Assembly: GCF_963676685.1 (NCBI RefSeq)
Contig: NC_092356.1
Location: 61,814,001-61,878,000 of the forward strand
DNA: 64,000 nucleotides
Source: Mytilus edulis
Lineage: Eukaryota
Reading direction: 5' to 3'
The notes under the pieces are model-generated. The model searched no databases and was not told the DNA's origin. It saw nothing but the letters and a program-made list of their open reading frames with translations. Positions 307 to 64,000 of the stretch are shown in pieces (position 1 is the first letter of the stretch; the number at the start of each line of letters is the position of its first letter). A program made the position numbers and the translations under genes.

Positions 307-1157
307 TTAACTGTCCTCAAGTGTTACAATTGCCTACCAGAATGTTTAATTAATACACACACGCCTTGTCCCTTGGTCTGAGTACAAACAGATTTTATTG
401 GTTTTTTTATTTATCCAAATAATTAGTGAGTATGCCCATACATGTAATAACTTGCATTTCGAAACAAATTATCTTATCGCCAATGTTGTTCATTCTTCAA
501 AATCACAACACCAGAGATATGATAACATTGCAACAAATGTTATTAATAAACAAATAAGCTTTATATTAATTCAAAATTGGTTCAAATTAAGAAGACACAA
601 TATAAATTCTTTATAGCCTTTGACTGCGAACATTAAGAGTTTAGGAGAAGTGCTATTCAATAAAGTACATTTGTGAATTGTAAAATGTATTTCGAAATGC
701 CTCCAAACATGATAGAATTTTGTGCTTAACAAATGATACACCAGTATTTTACATTGACTGTTTATCTGTAAAGGTTTACTCTGAGTATCGGTGAAATTTG
801 ATTATGCTAGAAGCCTAACAATATCTTCTGCTTTTTAATATTAAATGTGTGCCATAATTTGTAAACTAACTTATAATAAATTATTCTCACCTGTAATTCT
901 CATCGGAATTGTCTTCCTTTGCCTTTGCTGGTCTTTCACCTTTTGGTAGGAACCTTCAAGGATAAAAAATTTTGTTTTATATACATGTATATATATCTTT
1001 GGATCAAATTAAAATATGATTTTTCACTTATCATTCTATATTATTCGTTTTTGCTTTATTGAGCATTTTATCACTTTTATTTGTAAGAAAGGGAAAAACA
1101 TTTATCCAAACCCACAGAACATAAATTGCAATGCATTAGAAGGTAGACACTAATAAT

Positions 1158-1450
1158 TAACAAGAATGTGTAAATAGTACACGGTTGTCTCACTCGCTCT
1201 ATTATATTCTATGTTCAGTGGACCTGACATTTGGGCCAAAACTCTAATTCGGCATAAAAAATTAGAAAGATTATATCATAGGAAACATGCCGTCCGGTCT
1301 AAGTTACAAGTTGATTGGACTTCAACTTCATCAACAACTATATTGCCAAAATATTTAACCTGAAGCTGGACAGATGAATAGACTTACAAACGGATGAATG
1401 AAGGAGGGACGCACAGACCAAAAAATCATAAGGCCAATAAATGGAAACTA
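1158..1450. mobile_element. Short decayed Helentron-type (pearl/MgE-like) element; second copy at ~47288-47590
   Basis: Starts aacaagaatgtgt..gtacacgg, has one satellite monomer, a decayed GACG-type microsatellite and gacgcacagacca end; homologous to 58563-59585. Confidence 0.6.
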
Positions 1451-1468
1451 TGATTATAAACACTCTTT

Positions 1469-2456
1469 AAAACCAGGTGCTCCGCAGGGTGCAGCTTTAT
1501 ACGACCCCAGTGGTTGAACCCTGAACAGTTGGGACAAATTTGGTCACAATATTCAAGCTTGATTCTGTCTGAATTTGGATTGTGATCAAATTTTTGAAAT
1601 AATATAGGTTTTTGTCACAAAATTAATGTGGTCAAAGATCTAACAAATCTATTGCACAATACTGTGCAATTGAAGATTTCTTCTTGAAACTTTTCAGAAT
1701 TCGAAATTTGAAGCCCTTCAAAAAATGGTAAACAAACCCCCCCCCCCCCCCCCAACTTTTTGAAACCCCCTTGGAGTAATAACCCTTAAACTCAATCCCA
1801 TGCTTTCCATTGCAGTATTGAACCTTGTAGTACAATTTCAGAGAGATCCATACACTTAAACACAGGTTATTGTCATGATTGTTTGGAAACTAGGAACATG
1901 CTTCTTTTTGGCCCTTTTTTTGGCCCCTAATTCCTACATATCTTGGGCAATTAACCCAAAACTTAATCCCTGCCTCCCCTTTTTTATATGGTACATTGTG
2001 GTACAATTTTAGAGAGATCCATACAATTACACATAAGTTATTGTCTTGAAACTAGAAAAATGCTTGTTTTGACCCCTTTTTGGCCCTTAATTCCTAAACA
2101 TTGGCCCCATAACCCCTAAAATGAATCCAAACCTTTTACTTGTGGTTTTAAACATTGCGGTATGATTTCAGAGCAATTGAAATACTTCTACACAATTTAT
2201 TATCCTGAAACTAGTAAAATGCTTGTTTTGGGCCCCTTTTGGGCCCCTAATTCCTAATCGGTTGTGACCATCATCCCCAAAATCAATCCCAACCTTCCTC
2301 TTGTGGTATTGAACCTTCTGAAAAAATTTCATGAAGATCTATTCACTTAAACTAAAGTTATTATCCCGAAACCAATGTGTCTTCGGACGACGACGACGCA
2401 GACAACGACATCATACCATTATACGATCCCAAAATTTTTTTGGGGTCATATAAAAA
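1469..2456. mobile_element. Helentron-type non-autonomous element with ~160-bp internal tandem repeats
   Basis: Present in units 1 and 3, absent from units 2 and 4; inserted in an A-run; (GAC)n microsatellite and terminal hairpin near the right end. Confidence 0.7.
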
Positions 2457-3261
2457 TCTGTATTAACCTGGTTGTATCATCATCTGACTCATCACTGTCT
2501 GATTCAAACAAGGCAGAGAACTCTTCCTTTTCTGCAGCTGTGGCCGTCTGAAGTACTTTGGGTCCTTTTGGTCTTTCAATAATCGGTATATTTGCCTCAG
2601 CCTTAGAGAGTCCCTAAAATATAAAAGCGTATTGTTTATTTGGAATCATTACAATTGCTGTATTGATTATGATAGATGTATGATGCAGGGAAAACATGCA
2701 GAAGAGAACAAAGTCAGTTTTATTTTATATCTTTATCAGATATACCAATTTGATGGTAGATTATAATTTCAGCAATTCGTTTAATACAAGTTGATATTTG
2801 AGATAATGATATATCAGGAATTGTAGTATTAGAAACTTCTGGATCGTTCTATAATTAATGCATATCATTACCACTTTCATCATAAAAAGTTCTGATATTT
2901 ATTTGAATATATATTAAACTGTTAAAAGCGTAAAAACAAAACGTTCTGTTTAATACAAGGACTGTAGTCCAAATTTACAAATTAAAAAAAGACCCTGTTA
3001 ATTGTAATATGAAGGAACATTATGAGGTGAACAAAACTAGTGTCCTATTTTGATTAACCTGCATCTGGATTCTTAACAAATTCTTATCATTAGCTGACCT
3101 GTTCTTAAGCAGCAATCTGGTACTGCAATTCTCTGTCTCGTAGCTTCCTCCATGTGGTGAAGTATTTACCTAATGGAGTACCAATATTCTTACACTGTTG
3201 TTCCCATGCTGTCTGTAAAAGAGTAGAATTATAATTGTTTAAATTATTTCATTTAGTTTGT

Positions 3262-3560
3262 ATACAACTACTACAACAAGATGTTCACAAAGTATAAATA
3301 CACCAACAACAACACCATTTACACCAAGTATAAATATATCAACAACAACAAGATCTTCACCGATAATGCATAAATGAACAATGACTATAGCTCCACCAAG
3401 TATAAATACATGATCAACAAGATTATTTCCAAGCACAACATTAGTAAGATCTTCTCTTAGTATAAATACATCAACAAAAAGATCATCACAAAATGCAAAT
3501 TTATATACATCAACAACAACAAGATCTTCAGAAATTACAAATGAATCAAACGCAACAAGG
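3262..3560. repeat. Degenerate ~33-36-bp CAA-rich minisatellite beside a NOC2L splice acceptor (also ~22977-23275, ~49405-49700, ~59812-60110)
   Basis: Recurring aagtataaatacatcaacaacaacaagatcttc. Confidence 0.75.
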
Positions 3561-4939
3561 ATATATTATTTTTGGCAAATTTCCAATGGAATTTATTAAT
3601 AACTAAGTTTTTGGCAAATTTCCAATATACTTAATTTAAGAGCAGTTTAGGTGAGCTATTAAAATGAGTTTCAATTACCGACCTTACACTGCTTTTAAAT
3701 TATGTTTTGTACTTAAGTAATTGTCCATTAACCTGGAAACCCTTTTCCCCCCTTTTTTGCACCTTATTCCAACGGTTTTAATAACCGGTCCTAAATATTA
3801 AAAATCTAAATACATGGTTAGATTCAGCATATTGAAGAACCCCATATATTGAATTTTTGTTGAAATCAAACAGTTTAATTTTGGACCCAGATTTGACCAA
3901 CTTGAAAACTCAGCCCATAATCAAAAAACTAAGTACATGTTTAGATTCAGCATATCAAAGAACCCCAAGAATTCAATTTTTGTTATAATCAAACTAAGTT
4001 TAATTTTGGACCTTAATGTAATCCAATTTGAAAACGGGACCAAAAATTAAGAATCTAAATACACGGTTAGATTCGGTATATCAAAGAACCCCAATAGTTC
4101 AATTTTTGATGAAATGAAACAAAGTTTAATTTTGGACCCTTTTGGCCCCTAATGCGTTGGGACCAAAACTCCCAAATCAATCCAAACCTTCCTTTTGTGG
4201 TCATAAACCTTGTGTTTAAATTTTCATAGATTTCTATTAACTTATACTAAAGTTATTTTGCAAAAACCAAGAAAAATGCTTATTTTGGGACCTGTTTTTG
4301 GCCCTAAACTATTGGGATTTAAACTCCCAAAATCAATCCCAACCTTCTTTTTGTGGTCAAAGACCTTCTGTTAAAAATTCATAGATTTCTGTTTACTTAT
4401 TCTAAAGTTATTGTGCGAAAACCAAGAAAAATGCTTATTTGGGCTCTTTTCGGCCCCTTATTCCTAAACTGTTGGGACCATAACACCCAAAATCAATCCC
4501 AACCTTCCTTTTATCATCATAAACCTTGTGTTTAAATTTCATAGATTTCTATCTATGACGCCAAAGTGATACCAATATACAACCAAAAATTTTTCAATTT
4601 TTGCGTTCGTATAAAAACAACATGTAAACATTTAATGCGTCCGAGGCATTTTTCTGGATTAACCTTCATGTGGAAGCTTCAAAGCCGAATATTTGAAAGC
4701 CAAAGATGCATAAAACAGAAACATTTTAAGAGCTATTTAATAAAAAAAAATTCCTAAAATAATAGCCAAATCCTTGACCTTCTAAGGCCAACTCAGCCTG
4801 ATGGAGTTCAAACCTGATTGAGTTTCTTTAATAATGAATACAAAATTTATAAACAGGCAAATTTAGAAAGGTTCTTTGTTATTCACGGCAGTTCAAAAGA
4901 GCTGATTTCTGATCTCATGGTACCCTCTGGAACTGATCC

Positions 4940-5134
4940 AATATAGCGGGTTATTTTCGCGGGTGTAAAATCTCGTTGAATAAGGTATACAAAATATTTT
5001 GGCAGTTATTAATTTTGCGGAATTAAAACTTTTATCAATACCTTTGCATGTACATTTATAATTTGACGATTTTGTTCTACCCGCAAAAATAATTAAAAAA
5101 TTTACAACCCACAAAAATTACCCGCTATACAGTA
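4940..5134. mobile_element. ~190-bp TIR MITE (also ~25748-25928, ~51060-51257, ~62620-62815)
   Basis: tatagcgggttattttcgcgggtgtaaa ... tttacaacccacaaaaattacccgctatacagta inverted ends. Confidence 0.7.
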
Positions 5135-5974
5135 GTCCACCTGAAGATGTATTAACCCAGTGATGTAACAAAGTGTATAAATGTAATGCGCCACTCACAA
5201 GTGCTTTTCTGGATTAACCTTGATCAGGAACACTTAATCCTCTTTTTGAAAAGTACAGTGGTGTGAACAACATATGTTGAACTGTTAAAAGAAGCATATT
5301 CTAGTTTCTAATTCGTTGAACTTTCTTAGCAAGAAATATTGGAAAGTTGAAACCAAGTAGAAATAAGAATAAATATTGCCAATAAAATGCCTGAACCACC
5401 TGAATAATATTTGGTCTGTTGCCTCTTTATTTTGGTATCTGGTCTGTTGATTATAGATACGATTCTCAAATTTATGGACTACTTTGAGTGTAAATCATAC
5501 TAGTCTTTTTATTTCAAAACCCATCCCTGATTTTACCCTGTTCTAATCTAATTGAGTTGTCCTTCATTGAACAGAAAATTGCAGTTCTTCATTGAAATAG
5601 TCAAATACAAAATTTCTATCAAAATTTAGGTTAGGAAAATGAATAGTTTGTATGTTTTTTTTAACTTAGCACTTAGCATGGATTCAAAATGGTTTCTACC
5701 TTTAAATTATGATATAGCCTATGAGATTTAAATAAATAAATATATAGATGTTATTTGGTTTTTCATGTCAATGAGATGCTCATGATCACTATCTAAATTC
5801 CTATTAGTCAATATTTACATTTATTCATATAGTTAATATAACACAAGATAATTTTAACTAAATACATTTAAATTGTAAACATTGTAAAGATAAGATAGTA
5901 AAGCAATTCAAACATTGCTATTTATAGACGTTGGGCACAAGGAAGTAAAAAAATCAATTCAGACATCTTTAAAA

Positions 5975-7216
5975 ATGGCCTTTGCAAGTTCTTTACAAAA
6001 AGGACAAATTCCAGTAGGATGTGAAATATGCCAAGGTAAAAATAAGATTGAATTCAAATGTCTGGACTGTAACATTTTAATGTGCAGTGGCTGCAAAGAT
6101 AGAGTCCACTTAAAAATTGCAAAAGATCATCAGATAACAGATATAAAAGAAATAGGAAAACGTGTTATTTTCAGTGAAATTAAGTGTGAACACCATACAG
6201 GACAAGCATGCTGCCTTTTCTGTCAAACATGTAAAACATTTATCTGTCTGAAGTGTGTAGCTAAAGTTCATAATGGACACGAGTTGATTGAAGAAGAAGA
6301 CTATAATGAAGGCAAAGTAGAAATGAAGCCAAAACAGCAGAGTAAGATTGAGTTTGAAATATCCAAAGAATATACAACAGATCTTACCTCTATTCACAAT
6401 ATAGCAGTATGTTCTGATGGTACTATGTGGATGGGGGATAATGCCAGATCAAAGTTACAACATGTCAAACTTAAAGAGAATAGAACTGAAGTAATAACAA
6501 GTCAAAACACTAAGATTTATGGAATGGCAAAAACTCATTCAAATAACATTCTTGTTACAACAGATGTGACCAAACTCAAACTAATCAACACTATGACAGG
6601 ACAGATGACAGATTCCAGGTATGATGTAACACCATTGTATCCAGTCAGTATCCATGTAACCAGTGATCACAGGGTCATCATAGGAGCCAAGACTGGAGGT
6701 AAACCATTCCCTGCCACAGGAAGACGTGTAGTGGTGGTAATGGATCAGGAAGGAAAACAACTAAAGGAATATGAACATGACAAACATAACAAACGATTAT
6801 TCACCTACCCTCGACGTGTAACAAGTACCAGTAATGGTAACATCTGTGTGGTGGACATGTTAGATAATGATGGCAGAGGTAGAGTGATAGTGTTATCACC
6901 AGGAGGAGACGTAGTAGGGGTATACACTGGTCACCCTGATGTCAACACTGAGGAGAAACCATTTAAACCTCATGGAATACTTACAACACCATCAGATAAT
7001 ATTGTTCTTACAGATATGGACAATCATTTATTACATATACTGACTGACCAAGGACAAAGTATTACCTACTACAACCTCAGTGACATGGGGATCTTATATC
7101 CATTCTACCTATCTCTGTCAACATCAGGAACTATCTATATTGGATGTACTAGTAAAGCAGGAAGTCCAGACACTACAAAGGCCAAACTTTATGAGTTGGA
7201 ATATTCTGGAATCTAG
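5975..7216 (+). CDS. B-box/B-box + NHL-like beta-propeller protein (TRIM-NHL-like, no RING or coiled coil), 413 aa, nested antisense in a NOC2L intron
   Basis: ATG at 5975 (the ORF-track start is a TTG; likely splice acceptor tttatag at 5927). Zn motifs CEIC..CLDC..CSGC..H..H and CEHH..CQTC..CLKC..HNGH, followed by NHL-like repeats (e.g. FTYPRRVTSTSNGNICVVD, FKPHGILTTPSDNIVLTD). Confidence 0.92.
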   Translation: MAFASSLQKGQIPVGCEICQGKNKIEFKCLDCNILMCSGCKDRVHLKIAKDHQITDIKEIGKRVIFSEIKCEHHTGQACCLFCQTCKTFICLKCVAKVHNGHELIEEEDYNEGKVEMKPKQQSKIEFEISKEYTTDLTSIHNIAVCSDGTMWMGDNARSKLQHVKLKENRTEVITSQNTKIYGMAKTHSNNILVTTDVTKLKLINTMTGQMTDSRYDVTPLYPVSIHVTSDHRVIIGAKTGGKPFPATGRRVVVVMDQEGKQLKEYEHDKHNKRLFTYPRRVTSTSNGNICVVDMLDNDGRGRVIVLSPGGDVVGVYTGHPDVNTEEKPFKPHGILTTPSDNIVLTDMDNHLLHILTDQGQSITYYNLSDMGILYPFYLSLSTSGTIYIGCTSKAGSPDTTKAKLYELEYSGI

Positions 7217-9209
7217 TGGTCACAAGGTCCAAAACAAAATTGATAAAAGACCTGATAGCAAACGAAATGGATTTGGAAGAACTGATATACTGAGAAATAA
7301 AAGGACAGACCAAACAGAATTTGACAAATTAATCTCTAAGAATTAAAGAACAAACGGATATATATTGTAAGCATATTTATCATTTTTGTAATACGATAGT
7401 TCACAAGGTGACACTACATGACAAGTCACTCTAGCCAGACACATTTTACTTAGCCATCACTACTAAATTCAGGTTGATTACCTGATAGGCAGCAAAGACC
7501 AAGTTTTAATTATCACCTGACATGAGCATACTACCAAGAGACACAAATTAGCTATAAATTCATGAGCTTCAATATTTTTATGTTAAACAAATACAAATAC
7601 AAATAATTTTATTTTGCAATGAGCGCCCCAAAGGAGCAGAAATATAACAACTTACAATAGCTTTGTCATCTGAGATACTGAAGGACACAGATTTTCTCCT
7701 GTCTGTAATAAACTTTGATGTCTCCTGAACTTTATCCACTATCTGTTTTATTTGTTTACAGTAGTTTGCTATTTTACATTTCTTCAGGAATTCCTTCATC
7801 TGAAATTCATACAATTAATATTTTTTTTACAATTTCAAAGAAAAAAGTAATTAATCTTTTGCAGATTTTGATAATGTATATAATGCAGTAGCAGTAAAAT
7901 TATTTTTCTTTGCATTATTAACAAATGCAGTGTGTTTACACTTTTAAATTATATGTTAAATTAATAACAAATGTCAAAAACAATTTATGTGGTTTTCTGG
8001 TTTGTATTGTTTCATATTGGGTTGAGGTGGAGCCTTTAATAGATGACTATACAGTATGTGTTTTGCTCATTGTTAAAGGCCATACAGTAAACTATAGTTG
8101 CATTAAGGCACATTATTTGGACATGGGTCGATACATTTTACACATAGAATATTTCTATGATATCTATTTGTTACATAATAAAAAATATACACCTCTTGCA
8201 AAAATATTCAATAATAATTGTTGTGTATTGTTTTCCATATTCATTAGGAATAGATGGTCTTTTTCAAAAGAGAGTTCCTGTCATCTTTTTTTATATAAGT
8301 ACTGATCAGATGATTATATAAAAAAAAATCGTAAGGTTTCCGCTGAACCCACTGTCTATCGCCTACTTTTTTTTTTTTTACAAAATTTACTTCTGGATAC
8401 TGTCTTTATGATCATAGACAAGGTTCTGCTCAATTTTGGTAGAAATCCAGGACAGTTTAAGAAAGTTGTTAACATTTCAAAAACTTTAACCACAGAGTGA
8501 ATATTTGTGGACTCTGCTGCTGCTGCCGAAGGAATGTAGGATCGCTATGTCTTGCTTTTTCGACAAAATTCACAAGCAACTAAAAGAGATAATTCAGGAT
8601 ATTAATTATCAACCATGAATATTTGACAATAAATGAAAACTTGTTGAATTATAAAGTTTGAAGCATCATTCAACAAATTTGAAATATAGAAAAATAGCCC
8701 TTATTAAACTACCTGAAGTATTGATGGTAAAACCAGTTCAGGAAAACCAATCTTATGAGCATGGATGTTAAAATGGTCCATAAATAGTTCATATAACTGG
8801 TCAATGATGCCATCCTGAAAAATAATGTTACAGTTACCTCCCTTTGTACAGACAATACACAAAGCAAATCTTAAAAGTGTAAAAAAACAAACATTTATTA
8901 TTGACATAAATATTCAGCGAATAAATAAAAATATATACATAAACAGTGATACATATTGAGAGTTCTTCTGACTGATAATTTATGATTTTCTAAGGTCTGC
9001 TTTTATATGTAGATATTGCTGTATTAAGACTGTATTCACTACATTTGGTTAGCTTATTAGCATTTCATCAGTTGTATATAGTATTGATGTTATTTAAGTT
9101 TGTACATAGTGTGCTGTGTTTTATTATAATTTCGTATATGACTCGCTTCTTTGGCTTTGTAAACAACACCTTGATAAAATTATCGATATATCAAATTATC
9201 AATACTTAT

Positions 9210-9643
9210 TTTTGTCCATCTGATGAGTTAAGCCTTTTTCAACTGATTTTTATAGTTTGTTCTTATGTTGTACTGTTATACCACTGTCCCAGGTTAGGGG
9301 AGGGTTGGGATCCCGCTAACATGTTTAACCCCGCCACATTATTTATGTATGTGCCTGTCCCAAGTCAGGAGCCTGTAATTCAGTGGTTGTGACACGTTTG
9401 TTTATGTGTTACATATTTGTTTTTCGATCGTTCATTTTTTTATATAAATAAGGCCGTCAGTTTTCTCGTTTGAATTGTTTTACAATGTCTTATCGGGGCC
9501 TTTTATAGCTGACAATGCGGTATGGGCTTTGCTCATTGTTGAAGGCCGTACGGTGACCTATAGTTGTTAATGTCTGTGTCATTTTGGTCTCTTGTGGGCA
9601 GTTGTTTCATTGGCAATCATACCACATCTTCTTTTTTTTATAT
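9210..9643 (+). mobile_element. Abundant interspersed repeat, probable Penelope-like 3' terminal fragment (also ~30068-30502; reversed at ~39165-39460)
   Basis: Three well-conserved copies in two orientations; homologous to the distal non-coding part of the RT-like relic at 18560-19670. Confidence 0.55.
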
Positions 9644-10387
9644 TAGCTAAACTTAGCGCAGACTAAGAGATATAAATAATAATGGATGTTAAAATATACA
9701 TGTACCTCTTACATAAATCCACATGTATCAAAACCTATTTGCAATTTATTAGAATGTTTAATTACTAAGCTTTATCTAACAGGGAGTAAAAAGGAACAGA
9801 CACATAGTGCTTTATTATAAGATTTAATTAGCTTAGATTGTGTGTTTAACTTTGGTTTGTTAACATTTAGTTTGCAATGAAATTGTCGAATTCTCCTAAA
9901 TATGTTTTTCATGTGTTGTAATAATCTGGTAGTTCTCATAAGATCAATCTAATTGCAGAAACATCTTTATCTCATTAATATAATCAAAAGTATTTCTTAA
10001 TATTTTTGTATTTTGTTCATAATCCTCAATTAACAATACTACAAAATGTATGAGTAAATAATTCTAGATCTGAGGCAAGATACAACTTAGAATGCATGAG
10101 GTTCTAGGACAGGATGATCTCTAATGTCAAAAAATACTTTCATGAAGCCCGTTATTCAAATAAAATTATAATTCAATTCATTAATAAAAAATAATATTTT
10201 TTAAACAACAATGTGTTACCTTAAAGGATTTCTCCACCAGCTGTGCTTTAGATAACTTCAAAATACAGGCAAAATTCAATGGTTTGAAACTGATACTTTT
10301 ATGCTTCTTGTTGAAGTCTGTCAGCTCAAAAACCTGCAAATAAATATTTTCAATACATTGTTTATTTTTTTTAAAAGGTCACATGTC

Positions 10388-10905: not shown

Positions 10906-12491
10906 AGTGATGACAAATGACTGATCTCCCTTCTTTAACAAATGATTTGATGAGCAGGAAAAATGAGAGCAAAATATTGAGTTATTTTCCTTCCTGGATA
11001 ACAATTGAGCAAGTCCTAAAAAATCAAAAGATGCAAGCAAAAAATGGAGTTATCTCTTTTTTCTTTTTTACAAAGCAGCAATTTGTTTCAAACCTAGATT
11101 GTTTCCATTTATACTATTTCATTTTGTATTATTTCTACTAAATAATTTTGTATCATTTGTACTATACTATTTTGTATTACTTATAAATTTTCCATTTGTA
11201 TTTTTTTTTACTATAATTTAGTTTCAAATTAGTTTGAATTCTTTTTATCCAATAATGGAAATGAGAATCAAGTAGGCAACCAATTTTACTTATAATATTT
11301 TTTGTCAGAGCTTTTATTTTATGTAGTCCTATTAGGTTCCAAATGTTTAGAAATTAGCTATCTACTAGGTACAGTCAGTGTATAGAAATTAGACTCAAGA
11401 AGGTACCAAAGTACACAAAAGACAGATCCTTGAGGGTATCCAAAAGTAAAGACATTTTTTATTCAAGAACTTTAGAAACTTTGATTATGTGTGAAAAGGA
11501 CATTCCTCAATGAAATGATGAAGACACTATTTATAGACAACCCCTTTGATCAATTAGCACAATGTGAAAATTGTCAATCATTGATGCTTTGTTTTATGGA
11601 AACCTAATTAAGTTATGATCAGTTGTTAATCTATATGTTATAATATACTTTTAGTATTTATATATCTATATTATATGTAAACAAATACATTTGTCTTGTA
11701 TGCATATTATATATAATTAATTACGAGTGTTAATAAAAGTAGTTTTAAAAAATCAAATTTGCAACATTTATTGACAAAAAAATTAAAAGGCATTGTCATT
11801 TAAAAATAACATCACAAAATCTCATAGTTTCTGCTTTCTTTATCTCTAATCTAACCTGAGCTGTTTGTATGATTTTGTTTTCAAATTAAACGAATAAAAA
11901 AAGCTGCCTGATAACATCAATGAAAAAAAAAAAACACACGCTAAAAATGCATGCACCCGACACAAATAAGTCAGGAACACTCAGTGCCGAATATTTGAAA
12001 GCCAATGATGCTTAAGAATCGAAATAGTTGAAGAGCTATATGAACCTAGACAATTAGCCAAATCCATTTAGACAGAAATGCAACAACACAGTACAAAAAC
12101 CATCAACCGTTATTTTGTTGTCCAAGTTGTCTGGAATAATGATATTTGTTACAAACAACTCTCCACGGGACGTTTTCATAAAAAAAATTTGCAGTCTAGG
12201 TTATTGAAGTGTTTACAAATAATGTTAATTCAAGTTTACGTTGTAATGTAAAGTTTAAGATGTACAATGATATATGTGACATGTTATCACAAAACAAGCT
12301 TTTTAAAGATCTTAAGATCCTATACCAAGTCAAGAAAATGGAAGATATCATCTCATAGTTATTTCTTTGTGTGTTGTATTGTCGTTAGATTTTTTTTACA
12401 CTTCAGTATTTCTGTTGTTTCGTTTTGTCCCTCTTATAGTTTAGTAAGTGTTTCCTTCAGATTAAGTTTGAAATAAAGAACGAAAAGACGC

Positions 12492-13790
12492 AAACTTGGA
12501 AACTTGTTATCCTCCTTCACAGACATGTATAAAAAGACAACCTTGAAAACATGATATCCTCCTTCACAGACATGTGAAAAAGGCAACCTTTGAAACTTGT
12601 TATCCTCCTTCACAGACATGTATAAAAAGACAACCTTGAAAACATGATATCCTCCTTCACAGACATGTGAAAAAGGCAACCTTTGAAACTTGTTATCCTC
12701 CTTCACAGACATGTATAAAAGACAATATTGGAAACATGTTATCCTCCTTCACAGACATGAATAAAAGGGCAACCTTGAAAACATGATATCCTCCTTCACA
12801 GACATGTGAAAAAGGCAACCTTTGAAACTTGTTATCCTCCTTCACAGACATGTATAAAAAAGACAAACTTGGAAACATGTTATCCTACTTCACAGAGATG
12901 TATAAAAAGACAACCTTGAAAACATGATATCCTCCTTCACAGACATGTGAAAAAGGCAACCTTGGAAACTTGTTATCCTCCTTCACAGACATGTATAAAA
13001 GACAACCTTGGAAACATGTTATCCTCCTTCACAGACATGTATAAAAAAGACAAACTTGGAAACATGTTATCCTACTTCACAGAGATGTATAAAAAGACAA
13101 CCTTGAAAACATGATATCCTCCTTCACAGACATGTATAAAAGGGCAACCTTGGAAACTTGTTATCCTCCTTCACAAACATGTATAAAAAAGACAAACTTG
13201 GAAACATGTTATCCTACTTCACAGAGATGTATAAAAAGACAACCTTGAAAACATGATATCCTCCTTCACAGACATGTGAAAAAGGCAACCTTGGAAACTT
13301 GTTATCCTCCTTCACAGACATGTATAAAAGACAACCTTGGAAACATGTTATCCTCCTTCACAGACATGTATAAAAGAGCAACCTTGGAAATTTGTTATCC
13401 TCCTACACAAACATGTATAAAAGGGCAACCTTGGAAACTTGTTATCCTCCTTCACAAACATGTATAAAAATGCAATCTTGGAAACATGATATCCTCCTTC
13501 ACAGACATGTATAAAAGGGCAACCTTGGAAATTTGTTATCCTCCTACACAAACATGCATAAAAAAAGACAAACTTGGAAACATGTCATCCTCCTTCACAG
13601 ACATGTATAAAAATGCAATCTTGGAAACATGATATCCTCCTTCACAGACATGTATAAAAATGCAATCTTGGAACCATATAATCACCTTTCACAGACATTT
13701 GTAAAAATACAACCGTATGCATTCATGTATTCCTCCTTCACAGACAGGTAAAAAAAGCAATCTCGGTAATATGTAAACACCCTTCACAGA
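12492..13790. repeat. 46-47-bp minisatellite, about 28 units
   Basis: ccttggaaacatgttatcctccttcacagacatgtataaaaagacaa repeated, partly as a 93-bp dimer. Confidence 0.95.
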
Positions 13791-51667: not shown

Positions 51668-51672
51668 CTAAT
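51668..51672. other. Deletion junction with CTAAT microhomology
   Basis: Left side matches ..gttctaatCTAAT (5548-5552); right side matches CTAATcacaagactacttcagg (15747-15751). Confidence 0.9.
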
Positions 51673-54600
51673 CACAAAACTACTTCAGGTTGTTTAAACA
51701 ACAAAGGATGTGCATACAGAGTTCACGAAAAATGAGATAGGACATAAATATTTAAATTGATTTTTTGGAAATCGATTAAACAACTTTTGACAAAACCACC
51801 TATTTTGACAGACAGACGCTTGAACATATCATAGTCACATATTAATTACCTGTATCAGAATAAGACACAATATGTTTATAAACGAACAACACACTTCTGA
51901 TAGATTAATAGCTCATCACAATCAATTTCTATTGTAGTAATAATCTAATATATTTCATATCTGCGATTTCGACAGGTTGAAGGAAAGTGTTGGAAAAAGG
52001 GGGGATTTAAGTAAAAATACTAATTGGGAACATTCAGTTTCGATGCAAATTATAATCATGGTGTTTCTACAACATTCACTTGCACCTTTTATGAATCAAG
52101 TATATGATTGTTTATCTTTAAAGAGATGTATATATAACAGTCAGGTGTAATGATAAAGATAGGTTCAATTTAAATTTGTGGTATAAATCAACCCTTCAAA
52201 TTGGGAAATACATCCTCACATTAGAAAAATAAACAACAAAGGCAGTAAAAGAGAACAAAAACTGGTCAGAAATGTCTAAATGACCCTTACTATGCTGACT
52301 AATGCTATAATTGTTAATTTCTATGTCATTTGGGTTTCTTTGGAGATTTGTCTCATTTTCAATCGTACCAAATTTTTATAATTTTTATGATTTAAAACGA
52401 CATAGCGACCTTGACCAATTATAAAACCTTGAACATATCTTTAAAAGATTGAATATTATCCGATCAATTAATTACCTTCTTACTACAGGTATAACTATGT
52501 CTTTCTATATTCTGATTTCACGCTTTTGTAGCTCTTTTGTCCATAATTCAAATTAAGTGACAGATATTAAATGTCTGTGTATAGAGACTTTCTATGCTAG
52601 AAAACGTAGTATAGAAAGTCAAGCTGTGCACTACCATGACTTTCTAAACGTAAATATATCATGTGCTGAAATAAAATCAACATACATTTAAATACATATG
52701 GCTGCATAAAAGACCGTAATGGTAAAATACCATGGAAAAAAGCCGTAATGGTTGGTACAAAAAGCAAATAATCGAGTAATTTTGGTTTTACAGTCATACT
52801 GATTTAGAGTATAATTATTGTACTCTGTCAGAATCACACCAATCAAAATACTGTGTTTATTGTTTCATTGACGGATCTGGGAAACCCGGAAATATTGCTT
52901 CCTTTTCAAATTGTTATAGATATCACAGGCGGACGGACATGATGCATCATCACAAAATTTTCGACAATTTTATTTTTTATGAATTCATTATAGCAAACCG
53001 ATTATTTCTCTTAATGATGAGTATTCTTCAACAACGAAAAATGTTGCCCTCAGTATTGAGGTGTTTTTCAATTTTATCATCACCTCTTATCTTGTTCTCG
53101 CAATTTCCTTAACCGATGCATGATGAATGTTTACGAAAACGAAAAAAAAAACCCGCAACTTCAACCCAGACTTTTGTTCATTAGACCGTCCATATTCAGG
53201 ATCTTGTTAAGATTATGTTCTATAGCTAATTAAAGTTTTCCTTATTTACAGAACATCAATAGTTGCATTCCTGTAATCTGAGATATATAATAAAATGTAC
53301 GGTAATCATATTCGAACTTAGAATGATCTGAAACTTAGCATATGATATAGAAACATATTTATTGTCGAACTAGATGTAGTTACTTATATTCCTTGGTTGC
53401 TTTCTCAATAACATATGCAGCGAGATCTTCATTTGTAATACTCAAATTTGTATTCTCTTTTTTTCTGCTGCTTAAGATATTCACTTTTTCAGGTAGTCAT
53501 CCTGTCATATCTAAAGTAAACAAACACCAGATCAAAATATGTTTACCCGTTCATTGTGTATCACTGATATTTTTTGTGTGGAAAGAGAGTATTTGGTATC
53601 AGTTAATACAAAAACCCAACAACAATACAATACATCTATTGTTTGTGTTTCGAAATTTATCATAATTTTCTACGAGTGTTAAATTGTTTATTGAGCATGC
53701 TAAATTCTGTTGCTTACATTATCTGGTTCCACAGCTTTATTTGTATATTTTTTTTCTATTTAAGAATTATTTTGGTTGATCTTTATTATATATGGATCAG
53801 ATATGGTTTGTCCATTTAAAGACTGGCTAGAACAGATAAACTGTTGACCACTAAGATCAGATCTGTCTCTCTGTTTTGTAATTTTGTTAAATACTGCAAA
53901 TGTTGAAGTCAAAATGGCAGTATTTTAACATGAAATAGAAAGGCAAGGATACCAAAGAAGCATTCAAACTCATAAGTCAATCACAAATCGCACCAAAACT
54001 TGTAGCGATTTCAGATGGCCTGAAAGAGAAAGCAAATCCTACTTCAGCTCAGGCTCCCGTCGTGTTGGTTATTTAAGTATAAACCAGGTGATATCTCTAA
54101 TGAGTAAACGTTGTGTAACTGGTAAGTTATCAAGTCAGGTAATTTGCATTCACAAATTACTTAAAACCTTTACCAAATTCTTCCATAGATACAAAGATTT
54201 GGTTGGCAAAATTAGCTACAAAATTGGCTATACCTGTAGACAACCTATATCAAACGGAATAGCACAGTCTTTTTTTATGATTGTGTTGCTTCAGAGCCCG
54301 GAAATATAGATACAATCCAGGAAAACTTATCAATCCTTTAAAAGGACCTACTGTGAAAGATTTCTAATTCAACTATATAAATTATTTCTTTGAATTTTGT
54401 CTTTATTGGTATAAATATCAATTGTGTTATCAGTAAATTAAATTCATACTAAATATTGTTTTACATACATATTTATATCTTCTGTACAGAACAAACTGTA
54501 CTACAATCAGTCGATACCTGTGTTTTGGCAAAAGGAAATGCTTTTCTCTGACATCCATTGGATGTGTACTGATTGATATTCTAGTCTTATACTTTTGTTA

Positions 54601-55565
54601 TGGGTTTCAAACTAGTTGTCAGTAACTCCTAGTAGTCTCACATCTGTTAATTGATTCTATGTTGTAATGAGCCTTGGTACGACTGGTCTTTGTTTTTGTT
54701 TTTGTTAGATGTTTTTATGGCTTATATTGAACTGAAAAGTTAAGGCCTTCCAACTGAGGTTTTGATAGTGTATGCTCATGCTGTACTGTTACACTACTGT
54801 ATAATATAAGGAGGAGTGAGTCTTAGTGCCTTCAAACGTGTTTAGCCCCACCATACTTCAATAAGCTAGTTCAGTGGTTGTTTTTAGTTCATATCGGTCA
54901 TATTTGTTTTCAGTAAATTGTTTTTATAAATTAGGCCATTTTCTCGATTGAATTGTTTCAAATTAGTCATGTACGGGGCCTCTTATAACCGATTATATGG
55001 TATAATTTTTTTCATAGATGAATGCTGTACAGTTGCCTAGTATTGCTTACGTCTACTTTGTTTAAACTTTGGTGGATAGTTGTAATATTATTCATACCAC
55101 AACTCCTTATTTTTATACAAACCCAAACTTTGAAACTATGCAAAAAGTATTATACAACTGCATACCAAATATCATTGAGTTTTATCTTAAACTGATATAA
55201 TCAACCACTTTTATATGTGCACTATGTAATCCAATAATAAGATAGACCATGACTAAGGAGGAGGAGCCAAAAAAATCTCCATGGAAAGTAAATTATCAAT
55301 GCTAATATATACCAAATATGATTGACTTGCCACTTATATTTCCCTGAAACTGACCAAATCACAACCTAATAATAAAAAGTTTTGTCGTCTATAGATCATT
55401 ACTAAGGCAGAGGGGTCTAATAATCTTCATTAGATGAATTAGATGTCATTGATCCAAAGAAGCAGATCATTCTAATATTACACTAATTATGGTGTAACCA
55501 TGAGGGTTTCCTTTATATTTGTTTAATTCATAACATTATACACAAAACACTATTCTGTTGAAGTT

Positions 55566-58500
55566 TTAATCAGAATCTGACATAGTGAACTCTTTAACAA
55601 TGTCCTCTTTATCATCGACATCATCTGACATGTCTTCATCTTCACTGTTTTCATCCTCATCATCATCTTCATCTTCATCATCAACATCATCGTCATCATC
55701 ATTTTGATCTTCATCATCATCCTGATTTTCATCGTTGTAACTTTCATCCTCCTCAACTTCACTAGCAGACTTTGCAAGTTGGTCAAGGTCATCACTATCA
55801 AAATCACTAAATCAAACAAATTGGATAATCATAATAAAATAATATCTATAACAATTTTTTTTCATTTTTTACATTTTCCAAACTTCCATATCGTCCTTAT
55901 AATGCTTACATTAAACACTTACATGTAACAGAGTACAATATGGTAAAATTCAAAATATATTTTATCATTACTAAGGGGTACAGATTAATTTTCATGAATA
56001 AAATAATAACTAGAACAAGTATTGGTTTTTTATTACATTTCCTAAACTTCCATATTATCCTTATAATGCTCAAATGGAACACTTAAAAAATGCACAAGGC
56101 AAAATTCCACAGTTATTCAACCATTACAAAGAGGCACAGGTTGTTGTTCTTCTTAAAATGAAGGGATGCAGATGCAAACTGATACCAATGATTATTGTCT
56201 ACCATAAACACAGTTGATCAGGAAAAATTAACATTACGAAATTGTAAAATCAAACGTCACTCAGGCATAATGCATACTTATGAACTCAAAATTAAAGAGC
56301 AAAGATGTTAATGCAACAACATACTAAATCTATCGGGTTTCTTAGTTTTACTTTTTCTTCGACTTTGCTCAATATTTGGCTTAAAACATTTGTATTAAAT
56401 TTATTTTTATATAAGGCATTGCTTATATATCGATTTGTTATTCAAATTTACATAAATATAAGTTGTTATCATTTATTAAATGGTGTTAACTGTCCGCACT
56501 TGTTACAATTGCCTACGGTAATGTTTAAGTATTGATAATATGTCTTGCACATTGGTCCTAGTACAAACATATATCGTTGGCTTTGATTTTGTTAATGCAA
56601 ATAATTAGGTGAGTATGACAATAATAATAACAAGTATTTCGAGGCAATTAGTTTATCTCAAATGTTGTTTATTCTTCAAAATCACTATAGTAGAGATATG
56701 ATAACAAACTTTATTAATAAATAAATAAGCTTTATGTTATAGTCAAAATTGATGCAAAACAAGACAACACAATATAAGTTCTATATAGCTTTTGAGAGAA
56801 GTGCAATTGAATGAAGTGCATTTGTAAATTGCAAAATGTATTTGCTATCCATCCATAAATTATATTTCTAAATGTCTCCAAACATAATGGAATGATGTGC
56901 TTAACATTTGATACACTAGTATTCTACATTGACTGTTGATCTGTTTACTCTGCGTTTTGGTAAGAATTGATTACACTAGCAGCCTTACCATATCTTCTGC
57001 TTTCTTATGTAACATGTGTGCGATGATTGTGAACTTGCTTATAGTAAATAAGTCTTACCTGTAATTCTCATCGGAATTGTCTGCCTTTGCCTTTGCTGGT
57101 CTTTCACCTTTTGGTAGGAACCTTTAATGATACAAAAAAATATATATTCCCGTTCATCTTTGGCGTCTTCATGTATGGCAATATAATACAACATGAGTCA
57201 ATTGTCTCAAAATTATTGTTTGGTCAAGTTTTGTTAAAAAAATATCACTAAAGGCATTTAACAAATGTTATTTAATACTTGATTCTACGGTGTCAGTGTG
57301 AACTGTATGACAGTCAACTCTATATAAATACCAATGCATTATCCATGTGATTGTACATATTGTTTGAGGTGCTAGAGATATAATATCCAGCTACAAAAGT
57401 AAATTTGATGTCAATATTAATACTCTAATAATTCCACATGGAGCAGGATTCACTTCCACTTTCATTTCCAGGTTTTTCGTGAGATTTGCATTGCTAAGTC
57501 TTTTACTAGTCTTTTCATCACTTTTTTGTTTTTGCCATGATATTGCTAGTTTGTTTTTTACTTCGTCTTTGAAATTTCTTTTGAGATTTTTCGCCTTTTT
57601 TTCTAATCAGAAGTGCTCAAACCATAATTAGAATTATAAAAGTGTCAAATGTAGGAATACAATTAAATCCAAAATCATGTATGATATATAACAATGTATA
57701 CGGAGGCAAGGCAGACCCTTATAAAGGAGGTCTCATTGGAGAGTTCTGATCCCAGATCGCTACTACTGTTTTGTCAGATTCTTGTATCACGCTTACACTA
57801 TGTACGTAAGCAATTCTCATCTTTTTGTAATTTCCTGTGTCCCACTAGACTTCATTTCCTGTTTTCACAGCACAGTAATTTGACATTCATGTGTCCCGCT
57901 TACCAAAAAATTGGCAATCCCGCATCAGGCTTAGACCTGAATTAGACCCACTTTAAATAGAAACTATGATTACAGACAGTTTTCTTAAAAATCTGTATTA
58001 ACCTGGTTGTATCATCATCTGACTCATCACTGTCTGATTCAAACAAGGCAGAGAACTCTTCCTTTTCTGCAGCTGTGGCCTTCTGAACTACTTTGGGTCC
58101 TTTTGGTCTTTCAATAATTGGTATATTTGCCTCAGCCTTAGAGAGTCCCTAAAATTAAATAAATGTAATGTTTATTTGGAATCACAACGATTGCTGCATT
58201 AATAAAACGAGGCAGGGGTAACCTCCTTAAGAGAACAATGTCAGTTTTATTTCGTATCTTTTAGTAATCAGATATACAAATTTGATAATAGATTATAATT
58301 GTATAGTTGATTTCAGCAATTTGTTTAAAAAAACTAGTTGATGTTTGAGATAATAATATATCAGGAACTTTAGTTTTAAAAATGTTTAGAGTATTCTGTA
58401 ATTAATGCTTATCAGTACAACTTTCATCGTTAAAATATTTAATATATAAAACTGTTAAAAGCATTTAAAAAAAAAGTTTTGTTCACAACAAGGACTGCAT

Positions 58501-59762
58501 TCCAAATTTACGAATTAAAAAAGACTCTGATTATTGTAATATGAAGGGACATTACAAAGTGAAACAAGAATGTGTCCAAAGTACACGGATGCCCCACTTG
58601 CATTATTATTTTACATGTTCAATAGACCGTGAAATTGGGTAAACAATCTAATTGGCATTAAATTAGAAAGATCACACCATAGGGAACATGTGTACTAAGT
58701 TTCAAGTTGATTGGACTAAAACTTCATCAAAAACTACCTTGACCAAAAACTTTAACCTGAAACTCACACTTTAATTTTCTATGTTCAGTGGTCCTTGAAA
58801 TTGGGGTCAAAAATTTAACTTGGCTGTAAAATTAAAAAGATCATATCATAAGGAACATGTGTACTAAGTTTCAAGTTGATTGGACTTCAGCTTCATCAAA
58901 AACTACCTTGACCAAAACCTTTAACCTGAAACTCACACTTTCATTTTCTATGTTCAGTGGACCGTGAAATTGGGGTCAAAACTCTAATTTGGCATTTAAA
59001 TTAGAAAGATCATATCATAGGGCACATGTATACTAAGTTTCAAGTTGATTGGACTTCAACTTCATCAAAAACTACCTTGACCAAAAACTTTAACCTGAAG
59101 CCAAAAACTTTAACCTGAAATTTGCACTATCATTTTCTATGTTCAGTGAACCGTAAAATTGGGGTCAAAACTCTAATTTGGCATTCAAATTAGAAAGATC
59201 ATATCATAGGGCACATGTATACTAAGTTTCAAGTTGATTGGACTTCAACTTCATCAAAAACTACCTTGACCAAAAACTTTAACCTGAAGCCAAAAACTTT
59301 AACCTGAAATTTGCACTATCATTTTCTATGTTCAGTGAACCGTAAAATTGGGGTCAAAACTCTAATTTGGCATTTAAATTAGAAAGATCATATCATAGGG
59401 CACATGTATACTAAGTTTCAAGTTGATTGGACTTCAACTTCATCAAAAACTACCTCGACCAAAAACTTTAACCTGAAGCGGGACAGACGGACGAACGGAC
59501 GAACGGACGAACGAACGGACGGACGAACGGACGCACAGACCAGAAAACATAATGCCCCTCTACTATCGTAGGTGGGGCATAAAAAACCAGAGTCCTCTTT
59601 TGATTAACCTGCATCTGCATTTTTAACAAATTCTTATCATTAGCTGACCTGTTCTTTAGCAGCAATCTGGTACTGCAATTCTCTGTCTCGTAGCTTCCTC
59701 CATGTGGTGAAGTATTTACCCAATGGGGTACCAATATTCTTACACTGTTGTTCCCATGCTGT
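55566..59762 (-). CDS. NOC2L: NOC2L last four exons, unit 4: 59649-59762, 58003-58148, 57059-57121, 55566-55806. Continues beyond the right edge and may be the end of the complete gene
   Basis: Intact GT-AG exons, open frame to the acidic tail and TAA. Upstream exons would lie beyond 64000. Confidence 0.8.
58563..59585. mobile_element. Helentron-type (pearl/MgE-like) element with five 169-189-bp satellite monomers, unit 4 only
   Basis: Monomer marker tactaagtttcaagttgattggac occurs five times; (GGAC/GAAC)n microsatellite; terminal hairpin atgcccc..ggggcat; empty site agtgaacaaaaccag at ~22745. Confidence 0.85.
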
Positions 59763-60719: not shown

Positions 60720-60991
60720 GGTGGTACCCAACACTTTAACTAAAATTAATTTGGCTCTTTTAATTTTCTTAAAATTTTGACAAAGTATTTACTTTGACCC
60801 TTTCACAAAAATATAAAAATTTCAAAAAATTTGAACCAATCGTTTTATCAGAAAAATTACACTGGTTATATAGCAGTTTGACAAACACTTATTTTGATCA
60901 TTGAGAAGCTTGATATTCCCTTAACAACACAACATATAAAAACGTTAAGCTGATTTTAAAGAGTTATCTCCCTGTAGTGTTAGGTACCACC
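60720..60991. mobile_element. Unit 4 copy of the 272-bp TTAA MITE
   Basis: Same TIRs and TTAA duplication as 23866-24137. Confidence 0.85.
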
Positions 60992-63650
60992 TTAACTAAA
61001 GTTTTTGGCAAATTTCCAATTGACTTTATTAATAACTAAGTTTTTGGCAAATTTCCAATGTACATAATTTAAGAGCAGTTTAGGTGAGCTATTAAAATGA
61101 GTTTCAATTACCGACCTTACACTGCTTTTAAATTATGTTTTGTACTTAAGTAATTGTCCATTAACCTGGAAACCCTTTTCCCCTCTTTTTTGCACCTTAT
61201 TCCAACGGTTTGAGCCATAACTCCCAAAGACAATTCTTACCATAGCTTTCTGGTATTCCAATATCCAAAATCTAAATACATGGTTAGATTCATCATATCA
61301 AAGAACCCCAAGAATTCAATTTTTGATGAAATCAAATAAAGTTCAATTTTGGACCCTTTAGACCTCAATGTGGACCAATTTGATAACCGGTCCTAAATAT
61401 TAAAAATCTAAATACATGGTTAGATTCAGCATATTGAAGAACCCCATATATTGAATTTTTGTTGAAATCAAACAAAATTTAATTTTGGACCCAGATTTGA
61501 CCAACTTGAAAACTCAGCCCATAATAAAAAAACTAAGTACCTGTTTAGATTCAGCATATCAAAGAACCCCAAAAATTCAATTTTTGTTAAAATCAAACTA
61601 AGTTTAATTTTGGACCTTAATGTAGACCAATTTGAAAACGGGACCAAAAATTAAGAATATAAATACACGGTTAGATTCGGTATATCAAAGAACCCCAATA
61701 GTTCAATTGTTGATGAAATGAAACAAAGTTTAGTTTTGGACCCTTTTGGACCCTAATGCGTTGGGACCAAAACTCCCAAATCAATCCAAACCTTCCTTTT
61801 GTGGTCATAAACCTTGTGTTTAAATTTTCATAGATTTCTATTTACTTATATTAAAGTTATTTTGCAAAAACCAAGAAAAATGCTTATTTTGGGACCTGTT
61901 TTTGGCCCTAAACTATTGGGATTTAAACTCCCTAAATCAATCCCAACCTTCTTTTTGTGGTCATAGACCTTATGTTAAAATTTCATAGATTTCTGTTTAC
62001 CTATTCTAAAGTTATTGTGCGAAAACCAAGAAAAATGCTTATTTGGGCTCTTTTCGGCCCCTTATTCCTAAACTGTTGGGACCATAACACCCAAAATCAA
62101 TCCCAACCTTCCTTTTATCATCATAAACCTTGTGTTAAAATTTCATAGATTTCTATCTACTTTTACTAAAGTTAGAGTGCGAAAACCAAATGTCTCCGGA
62201 CGAAGACAACGACGACCATGACGCCAATGTGATACCAATATACAACCAAAAAATTTTCACTTTTTGCATTCGTATAAAAACAACATGTAAACATTTAATG
62301 CGTGACTTATGCGTCCGAAGCATTTTTCTGGATTAACCTTCATATGGAAGCCTCAAAGCCGAATATTTGAAAGCCAAAGATGCATAAAACAGAAACATTT
62401 TAAGAGCTATTTAATAAAAAAAATTACCTAAAATAATATATAATACCCAAATCCTTGACCTTCTAAGGCCAACTCAGCCTGATGGAGTTCAAACCTGATT
62501 GAGTTTCTTAAATAATGAATACAAAATTTATAAACAGGCAAATTTAGAAAGGTTTTTTGTTATTCATGGCAGTTGAAAAGTGCTGATTTCTGATCTCATG
62601 GTACCCTCTGGAACTGATCCAATATAGCGGGTTATTTTCGTGGGTGTAAAATTTCGTTGAATAAGGTATACGAAATATTTTGGCAGTTATTAATTTTGTG
62701 GAATTAAAACTTTTATCAATACCTTTGCATGTACATTTATAATTTGACGATTTTGTTCTACCCGCAAAAATAATTAAAAAATTTACAACCCGCAAAAATA
62801 ACCCGCTATACAGTAGTCCACCTGAAGAGGTATTAACCCAGTGATGTAACAAAGTGTATAAATGTAATGCCTCACAAGTGCTTTTCTGGATTAACCTTCA
62901 TCAGGAACACTTAATCCTCTTTTTGAAAAGTACAGTGGTGTGAACAACATATGAATGAACTGTTAAAAGAAGCATATTCTGGTTTCTAATTCGTTGAACT
63001 TTCTTAGCAAGAAATATTGGAAAGTTGAAACCAGGTAGAAATAAGAATAAATATTGCCAACAAAATGCCTGAACCCCCTGAATAATATTTGGTCTGTTGA
63101 CTCTTTATTTTGGTATCTGGTCTGTTCATTATATCATAGATACGATTCTCAAATTTATTGACTACTTTGAGTGTAAATCATACTAGTCTTTTTATTTAAA
63201 AACCCATCCCTGTTAGTGATTTTACACTGTTCTAATCCAATTGAGTTGTCTTTCTTTGAACAGAAAATTGCAGTTCTTCATTGAAATAGTCAAATACAAA
63301 ATTTCTATCAAAATTTAGGTTAGGAAAATGAATAGTTTTTTTTTCAACTTAGCATGGATTCAAAATGGTTTCTACCTTTAAATTATGATATAGCCTATGA
63401 TATTTAAATAAAAAAATATATAGATGTCATTTGGTTTTTCATGTCAAAGAATTGCTCATGATCACTATCTAAATTCCTATTAGTCAATATTTACATTTAT
63501 TCATATAGTCAATATAACACAAGATAATTTTAACTAAATACATTTAAATTGTAAACATTGTAAAGATAAGATAGTAAAAGCAATTTTAACATTGTTATCT
63601 ATAGTCGTTGGGCACAAGGAAGTAAAAAATCAATTCAGACATCTTTAAAA

Positions 63651-64000
63651 ATGGCCTTTACAAGTTCTTTACAAAAAGGACAAATTCCAGTAGGATGTGA
63701 AATATGCCAAGGTAAAAATAAGATCGAATTCAAATGTCTGGACTGTAACCTTTTAATGTGCAGTGGTTGTAAGGATAGAGTCCACTTAAGGATTGCAAAA
63801 GATCATAAGATAACAGATATAAAAGAAATAGGAAAACATGTTATTTTCAGTGAAATCAAGTGTGAAAACCATACAGGACAAGCATGCTGCCTTTTCTGTC
63901 AAACCTGCAAAACATTTATCTGTCCGAAGTGTGTAGCTAAATTTCATAATGGACATGAGTTGATTGAAGAAGAAGACTATAATGAAGGCAAAGTAGAAAC
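63651..64000 (+). CDS. Third B-box/NHL paralog, 5' part (runs off the window)
   Basis: MAFTSSLQKGQIPVGCEICQGKNK...HNGHELIEEEDYNEGKVE is open to the window end; missing from the ORF track because no stop is reached. Confidence 0.9.
   Translation, partial: MAFTSSLQKGQIPVGCEICQGKNKIEFKCLDCNLLMCSGCKDRVHLRIAKDHKITDIKEIGKHVIFSEIKCENHTGQACCLFCQTCKTFICPKCVAKFHNGHELIEEEDYNEGKVE

Follow-up and report, generated by a model that had tools for sequence, protein, structure and literature searches.

The 64,000-nt stretch of Mytilus edulis chromosome C13 analysed here (C13:61814001-61878000, hereafter the window; the genome is 1.37 Gb) holds a tandem array in which seven 3' exons of NOC2L, an essential ribosome-biogenesis gene, recur on the minus strand together with a B-box/NHL gene that is nested on the plus strand within one of their introns. 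We consider it reasonable, with a probability of roughly 60%, that this is a genuine tandem segmental duplication of the seven-exon NOC2L tail and its nested gene, in which the copied host exons are constrained and would be used as alternative 3' ends, and the nested genes have followed a course of their own. The array was delimited by direct-repeat and self-BLAST comparison extended into the flanks (40 kb upstream and 160 kb downstream), by a Pfam profile search and by tblastn with bivalve NOC2L proteins. All positions are window coordinates, and those outside the window are negative or exceed 64000. Single exons served as search queries, and exons were joined only for frame checks and distances.

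Four units lie head to tail at approximately 1-20790, 20790-46134, 46135-56170 and 56170-71500, the fourth overrunning the window, with an inter-unit identity of 93-98% in the alignable parts and numerous large insertions and deletions. Upstream of these, from about -13500 to 0, is a fifth and older unit, which matches the others piecewise at 80-95% identity. The proposal of an earlier note on this DNA, that four tandem units carry NOC2L 3' exons on the minus strand, holds up in the self-comparison, the Pfam Noc2 search and the tblastn search; its unit boundaries need to be shifted, since the terminal exon of each module sits at the end of what it had taken as the preceding unit. The repeated module comprises seven exons, Ea to Eg, which encode residues 546-852 of the 852-aa protein, and its four copies are alpha (Eg at -1237 to -1003 and the rest at 891-10333), beta (20132-31192), gamma (44079-49355) and delta (55566-70095). 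The modules fall into two types according to Ee, Ef, Eg and the intervening introns, with beta and delta as type I and alpha and gamma as type II, so that the order along the array is II, I, II, I. The introns differ by 16-21% between types, by 1.4-2.6% between alpha and gamma and by approximately 3.5-5.8% between beta and delta. Unit 1 is closest to unit 3, unit 2 is closest to unit 4, and the old unit ends in sequence resembling the end of unit 2. From this we conclude that the array is a higher-order repeat that arose when a block of two modules, some 46 kb long, was duplicated. One and the same junction, where a B-type end gives way to a type II module, is found at 0/1 and again at 46134/46135.

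The head of the host gene is present once. The NOC2L 5' exons form a single set at 198581-216501, outside the window and about 128 kb past unit 4, and a whole-genome Pfam search confines Noc2 exons to this chromosome, with three 3' sets (units 1, 2 and 4) and the one 5' set. Scored exon by exon, the Noc2 family (PF03715, cut-off 29.9 bits) gives 34-47 bits in units 1, 2 and 4 and 55-89 bits in the 5' exons. The RefSeq M. edulis NOC2L protein P0252 (XP_071147627.1, 852 aa), found through a search with one 5' exon and then with molluscan NOC2L, is reproduced residue for residue by enumeration of GT/AG junctions when the 5' exons down to 198581 are joined to module delta across a 128,485-bp GT-AG intron. 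A complete NOC2L coding model is obtained only via delta; alpha, beta and gamma are without 5' exons and will be called headless. The comparison extended into the flanks, which the earlier note had recommended, thus bears out both its claim that units 1-3 lack NOC2L 5' exons (none was found in any unit) and its placing of the array at the tail of the gene, with the 5' exons present once and the 3' module four times. Among the long open reading frames of the 128-kb intron there are only fragments of long interspersed nuclear element (LINE) type, multi-exon genes not having been searched for there. The last 5' exon (198515-198581) stands next to this intron, and the intron together with the repeated tail regularly disrupts automatic gene models; several public Mytilus NOC2 models (of 553-559 aa, or 621 aa in the case of M. 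trossulus) stop where they read on from the last 5' exon, or from Eb, into the intron that follows.

The exon copies, all on the minus strand, are well preserved. In module delta every exon follows from the exact reproduction of P0252: Ea at 70095-69982, Eb at 68578-68477, Ec at 66964-66821, Ed at 59649-59762, Ee at 58003-58148, Ef at 57059-57121 and the terminal exon Eg, part of the RefSeq mRNA model, at 55566-55806. Module beta has Ea at 31079-31192, Eb at 29559-29660 and Ec at 28449-28592, all three found by the Pfam Noc2 search and by exon comparison and Ea and Ec covered by RNA reads as well, and its remaining internal exons, Ed (22814-22927), Ee (22186-22331) and Ef (21672-21734), were placed by exon comparison; its terminal exon Eg is of type I (20132-20366). 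Module alpha has Ea at 10220-10333, Eb at 8713-8814 and Ec at 7656-7799 (Pfam Noc2 and exon comparison), Ed at 3099-3212 (exon search and frame check), the type II exons Ee (2468-2613, 146 nt) and Ef (891-953, 63 nt), both with their AG/GT retained, and Eg at -1237 to -1003 (exon comparison). Module gamma lacks Ea to Ec and the nested gene and keeps Ed (49242-49355), Ee (48611-48756) and Ef (47019-47081), identified by exon comparison, and a type II Eg (44079-44331) that is 12 nt longer, in frame. The flanking AG/GT and the reading frame are retained in all 25 exon copies, with internal exons of exactly equal length and terminal exons varying by 6 or 12 nt in frame, and every terminal exon has its stop codon followed about 40 nt downstream by a poly(A) signal. 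The frames of beta and gamma are open. Alpha has one nonsense codon, in Ed (3105-3107), at which the RefSeq 106-aa stub P0360 (XP_071147626.1) terminates precisely; this nonsense codon may be recent and module alpha on its way out. The NOC2L remnant of the old unit consists of Ec alone, 134 nt long and frameshifted.

An array of this kind could also arise in the assembly if two haplotypes of a shorter locus had been joined end to end. The inter-unit non-coding divergence of 1.8-3.8% would suit such an origin, as allelic divergence in mussels reaches this range. We nevertheless regard it as highly improbable. The array is gapless, with no run of N inside it and the only one in the fetched stretch far off at 221934-222033, and its structure is regular, with the recurring junction type described above and with a 14-kb extension of module beta that is matched after the old unit but not past delta. 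The introns of types I and II are 16-21% apart, and both types are found in M. galloprovincialis proteins. In an older, independent M. edulis assembly there are three headless NOC2 models, two of which share a 43.8-kb contig, and the 5' models are separate. A genome-wide search with the single exon Ed returned exactly four copies, each within the window, and neither this search nor that for Noc2 found further copies on unplaced contigs.

To describe the constraint on the copied host exons, we counted divergence in well-aligned columns and compared exons with the non-coding DNA of the same units. The exons differ by 1.0-1.5% and the non-coding DNA by 3.0-3.8%. Between alpha and beta, 5 of 474 exon sites and 144 of 4811 non-coding sites are changed, where 14.2 exon changes would be expected at the non-coding rate (P = 0.005), and between beta and delta the counts are 12 of 918 and 270 of 7907 (Fisher P = 0.0002). 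The synonymous divergence of the exons (0.036-0.044) is equal to the intron level and the non-synonymous divergence is 0.004-0.009, giving a ratio of the two (pN/pS) of 0.08-0.25. Six of the 14 variable exon sites are non-synonymous, against an expectation of 80% (P = 0.0025), and even among the changes private to the headless modules only two of six are (P = 0.017). The site numbers in these binomial, Poisson and Fisher tests are small but consistent. Because exon divergence is below that of the non-coding DNA and the changes are mostly synonymous, the headless exons look constrained, as if purifying selection had acted on them during most of their existence.

This pattern is difficult to reconcile with the idea, put forward in the earlier note, that the nested B-box/NHL gene is what selection amplifies and that the NOC2L exons are functionless passengers bound to decay. 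Some observations do lend themselves to it: the nonsense codon of alpha, the large size of the B-box/NHL family in this genome (at least 1598 first-look candidates), and the oldest unit, in which the nested gene is intact and the host is reduced to the frameshifted Ec remnant. The retention of splice sites and frame in 25 of 25 exon copies speaks against decay, however, as do the roughly threefold lower divergence of the headless exons, the synonymous bias of their changes and the mixing of both module types in the isoforms of sister species. The fate of the nested copies, given below, points in the same direction. We regard the passenger explanation as unlikely, although it comes nearest to the duplication with constrained host exons that we prefer.

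The use of the distal modules as 3' ends is suggested chiefly by these sister species. M. galloprovincialis has three RefSeq isoforms that differ only in the exons concerned, exactly at the positions that distinguish types I and II in M. edulis: X1 has type II Ee, Ef and Eg, X2 combines type I Ee and Ef with a type II Eg, and X3 is type I throughout. In M. californianus the differences among the RefSeq isoforms X1-X5 are confined to Ed, Ef and Eg. The type-specific residues (V/L, K/T and A/E) are common to M. edulis and M. galloprovincialis. Judging from the RefSeq models of these relatives, the distal modules are probably alternative 3' ends of NOC2L. Reads were compared with module beta only (26400-32300), in four runs that come from other animals, perhaps from pools or another species, and of which the DNA run was available as contigs only. 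The Ea-Eb splice joint of beta is present in three RNA runs, the letters of Ec are mixed in RNA and include the alpha-type G at 28458, and in the long-read RNA run the depth ratios in Ec require at least three haplotypes. Short contigs from one RNA library (run X15) also fall on unique-looking intron sequence of module beta, at 31247-31344 upstream of Ea and at 30566-30698 between Ea and Eb.

A course of events that would fit these observations begins with a block made up of NOC2L exons Ea-Eg and an antisense, intronless B-box/NHL gene without a RING, which would have become a two-module block of about 46 kb that was then duplicated. A single NOC2L promoter and a single set of 5' exons, 128 kb away, would serve the whole array, with the RefSeq mRNA joining the nearest module, delta. 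Transcripts not ended at the first poly(A) site, or spliced past the first module, could then take up the distal modules as alternative 3' ends. The nested genes would have been copied with the block and afterwards either retained or lost one by one, by the deletion in gamma and by a LINE insertion in delta.

The nested gene lies wholly in the Ec-Ed intron, on the strand opposite to the host, in alpha, beta and delta. Copy 1 (5975-7216, plus strand, 413 aa) and copy 2 (26764-28011, plus strand, 415 aa) are intact according to the list of open reading frames and the Pfam search. Copy 4 is split into 63651-64238 and 65725-66372 (plus strand) by a 1.49-kb 5'-truncated LINE fragment (64239-65724) with a 13-nt target-site duplication, and is thus broken 238 bases past the window end. 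The insert is the 3' part of a LINE reading frame with a weak zf-RVT match, and more than 380 candidates for it are found genome-wide, with copies that are 100% identical on C4, so that the insertion is very recent and this LINE family must have been active very recently. Module gamma has lost about 10 kb, containing the nested gene, Ec, Eb, Ea and a 47-bp satellite, at a junction where homology to units 1 and 2 ends at 51672 and restarts at 51868. The old upstream copy, B0 (-13409 to -12159), is intact with 416 aa, corresponds to the RefSeq protein P0008 and is 98% identical to an M. galloprovincialis protein. The earlier expectation of an intact nested gene in the same intron unless deleted is correct as to the Ec-Ed intron, the plus strand, the integrity of copies 1 and 2 and the deletion in unit 3, and fails for copy 4. 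Its view of the nested gene as subject to birth and death agrees with the record of the nested copies: two are intact, a third has been deleted and a fourth interrupted by a LINE, and an old one persists where the host exons have decayed.

Of the four young nested copies two are dead, against a nearly complete set of intact host exons. This counts against host exons that are mere passengers, and the nested gene may or may not have been the target of amplification. The public protein set includes P0008 and dispersed paralogs from the same assembly but neither of the two intact copies, which suggests that copies 1 and 2 were not called in RefSeq, possibly for want of expression support. Copy 2 has zero depth in the raw-read RNA run. 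Two other RNA libraries have contigs over the last two thirds of copy 2 and its 3' untranslated region (UTR), up to the edge of Ec; the unique intron bins beside copy 2 are empty. Contigs at 27984-28478 extend from the end of copy 2 over about 430 nt of 3' UTR and cross the boundary of Ec, which is on the other strand; these contigs are unstranded, and they could be explained if the two genes overlapped convergently or if a host transcript had stayed unspliced. In M. galloprovincialis the RefSeq accessions of NOC2L (XP_076087268-70) and of a B-box/NHL protein (XP_076087271) are adjacent, an unreliable indication of neighbourhood as M. edulis neighbours are far apart in numbering.

The protein encoded by the nested gene begins directly at its first B-box. 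Two stretches match PF00643 (zf-B_box) at 40-45 bits (cut-off 24.1), PF22586 remains under its cut-off, and the NHL family PF01436 matches at 22.8 and 28 bits (cut-off 20); the Pfam search gave no family match for a RING. The best solved relatives are the NHL domains of TRIM2, TRIM3 and TRIM71, with E values of 1e-8 to 5e-7. With a spacer of only some 30 residues between the second B-box and the propeller, a coiled coil there is unlikely in the product of this intronless gene.

The nested coding sequence (CDS) diverges at a rate quite different from that of its surroundings. In an alignment of alpha, beta and delta the non-coding divergence of 2-4% climbs across the B-box part to 10-13% over the NHL part and falls back within 150 nt past the stop codon. 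Over the whole CDS the array copies differ by 9-10%, compared with 3-3.8% in the flanks, with a synonymous divergence (dS) of 0.15-0.21 and a ratio of non-synonymous to synonymous divergence (dN/dS) of 0.4-0.56, or 0.56-0.71 for the NHL part alone. In this NHL part the array copies are no nearer to one another than to paralogs megabases away with unrelated flanks. The protein P0001 of M. galloprovincialis and the three array copies radiate as a long-tipped star in the protein tree, whereas the old copy has its 98% ortholog. A special mutational signature in the nested CDS was considered and rejected, the spectrum resembling that of the flanks. The likeliest explanation of the excess, we infer, is that old coding lineages have been kept apart by diversifying or balancing selection, with the rest of the unit homogenised by gene conversion; micro-conversion from unsampled paralogs is a possible cause.

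A further and rather speculative reading is that duplication has uncoupled the host from its nested gene, leaving three speeds of divergence within one unit, namely about 1% in the host exons, about 3% in neutral sequence and about 10% in the nested NHL CDS. On the same reading, which we would not expect to hold, the module normally used by NOC2L has lost its nested gene, and the distal modules keep intact ones and serve NOC2L as no more than optional 3' ends. The 10% figure might then reflect retention of old coding lineages as in the major histocompatibility complex (MHC), or some diversifying process limited to the CDS in an expanded mussel B-box/NHL family, a suggestion that we hold just as tentatively.

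Several points weigh against the duplication with constrained and reused host exons that we prefer. The mixed letters of Ec could be alleles, since the RNA runs may be pools or come from another species. The G at 31120 and the T at 28500 that are private to beta are unseen in the RNA runs and in one DNA run, so that beta may be silent or its private letters peculiar to the assembled animal; the same observation would suit functionless passengers. The reads, compared with beta only, include no M. edulis read that joins the 5' exons to a distal module, M. edulis has only one full-length NOC2L isoform in RefSeq, and RefSeq isoforms can be artefacts of allelic reads on paralogous exons. The low divergence of the exons could itself come from gene conversion seeded in conserved exons and not from use: the Ed-Ee intron differs by 16-21% between types and the exon synonymous sites by only 3-6%, an indication of some exon-centred homogenisation. 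As to the nested gene, no conversion donor appears among eleven dispersed paralogs, with no 120-nt window above 97% and no long donor-matched runs, and lineage-private changes are unclustered (runs test P = 0.14); long-tract conversion from these eleven sampled donors is rejected on this basis.

Carried further, exon-centred homogenisation would make the distal modules silent pseudo-exons that look conserved through conversion from the working module delta. The gap between synonymous sites and adjoining introns is what this would produce, and the within-species likeness of the M. californianus isoform exons suggests concerted evolution. However, conversion alone gives no synonymous bias in the changes private to headless modules, the V/L, K/T and A/E differences between types persist in both M. 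edulis and M. galloprovincialis, and exons of the distal type occur in the RefSeq models of two species. Silent pseudo-exons thus seem to us doubtful, and somewhat more so than the passenger explanation.

The remaining features of the locus are repeats and one open frame. A 47-bp satellite lies upstream of Ea in modules alpha (12436-13807) and beta (32931-33581), as found by self-comparison, and is absent in delta, where homology stops just short of its position at the array end; these satellites may mark the array edge or promote unequal exchange. Type II modules alone carry a 1-kb dispersed repeat in the Ee-Ef intron (1470-2457 and 47600-48590), of which over 15,000 first-look candidates, 87-95% identical, are spread over all chromosomes. 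Just upstream of the first NOC2L exons there is a tandem block that repeats about every 1608 bp (217925-222635), which holds the region's only run of N. It belongs to a dispersed repeat with more than 8,700 candidate copies that is also found at 24413-25424, and the homology between the latter segment and the block upstream of the NOC2L 5' end is, for this reason, meaningless. Downstream of the old unit, an open frame of 597 aa on the plus strand (-19857 to -18067) has no Pfam match.

The locus indicates that an essential ribosome-biogenesis gene can bear a multi-copy, partly redundant tail with its function kept, and that automatic annotation fragments such genes into headless NOC2 models and the 106-aa stub. 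Should use of the distal modules be genuine, the array would be a clear natural example of duplication and reuse of a 3' block of several exons. If the three-speed pattern holds in populations, this would be a compact locus for the diversification of the expanded B-box/NHL (TRIM-like) family of mussels, and one in which it could be tested whether nesting in a housekeeping gene limits diversification. Otherwise the array is ordinary in kind, since mussel genomes very commonly show segmental duplication and turnover of genes. A literature search found nothing on this locus or on the B-box/NHL expansion in Mytilus.

Each part of the system is known in kind, whether as segmental duplication, terminal exon blocks, nested antisense genes or birth-and-death evolution. 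As in partial-gene tandem duplications and blocks of alternative terminal exons, the head-to-tail copies keep their splice sites and phase, and the isoforms of relatives swap paralogous exons one for one. Tandem exon duplication differs in scale, since here seven exons over 15-25 kb are repeated, including the terminal exon and its poly(A) site and lying 128 kb from the rest of the gene, and it differs in outcome, since the encoded differences are few and mostly in the acidic tail and distal use in M. edulis is only inferred. Like other nested intronic antisense genes, the B-box/NHL gene lies entirely within an intron of its host, with a 3' UTR that seemingly reaches Ec; unlike them, it has been amplified together with host exons, and the copy in the module of the RefSeq mRNA is the broken one. 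Its protein shares with TRIM-NHL proteins (TRIM2, TRIM3, TRIM71/LIN-41 and Brat) the order of two B-boxes followed by an NHL beta-propeller, and departs from them in having no RING match, a spacer of about 30 residues, an intronless gene and a mussel-specific family of hundreds. The array also resembles birth-and-death clusters in its gain by duplication, its loss by deletion and transposon insertion and its excess of divergence in the CDS (9-10%) over the flanks (3-3.8%). The peptide-binding exons of the MHC are likewise more diverged than their introns; in contrast to MHC-like clusters, the overall dN/dS stays under 1 (0.4-0.7), and synonymous divergence is elevated as well. What is particular to this locus is the combination, in which the tail of an essential gene and a nested gene are amplified together, with constrained host exons, a broken nested copy in the usual module and three speeds of divergence.

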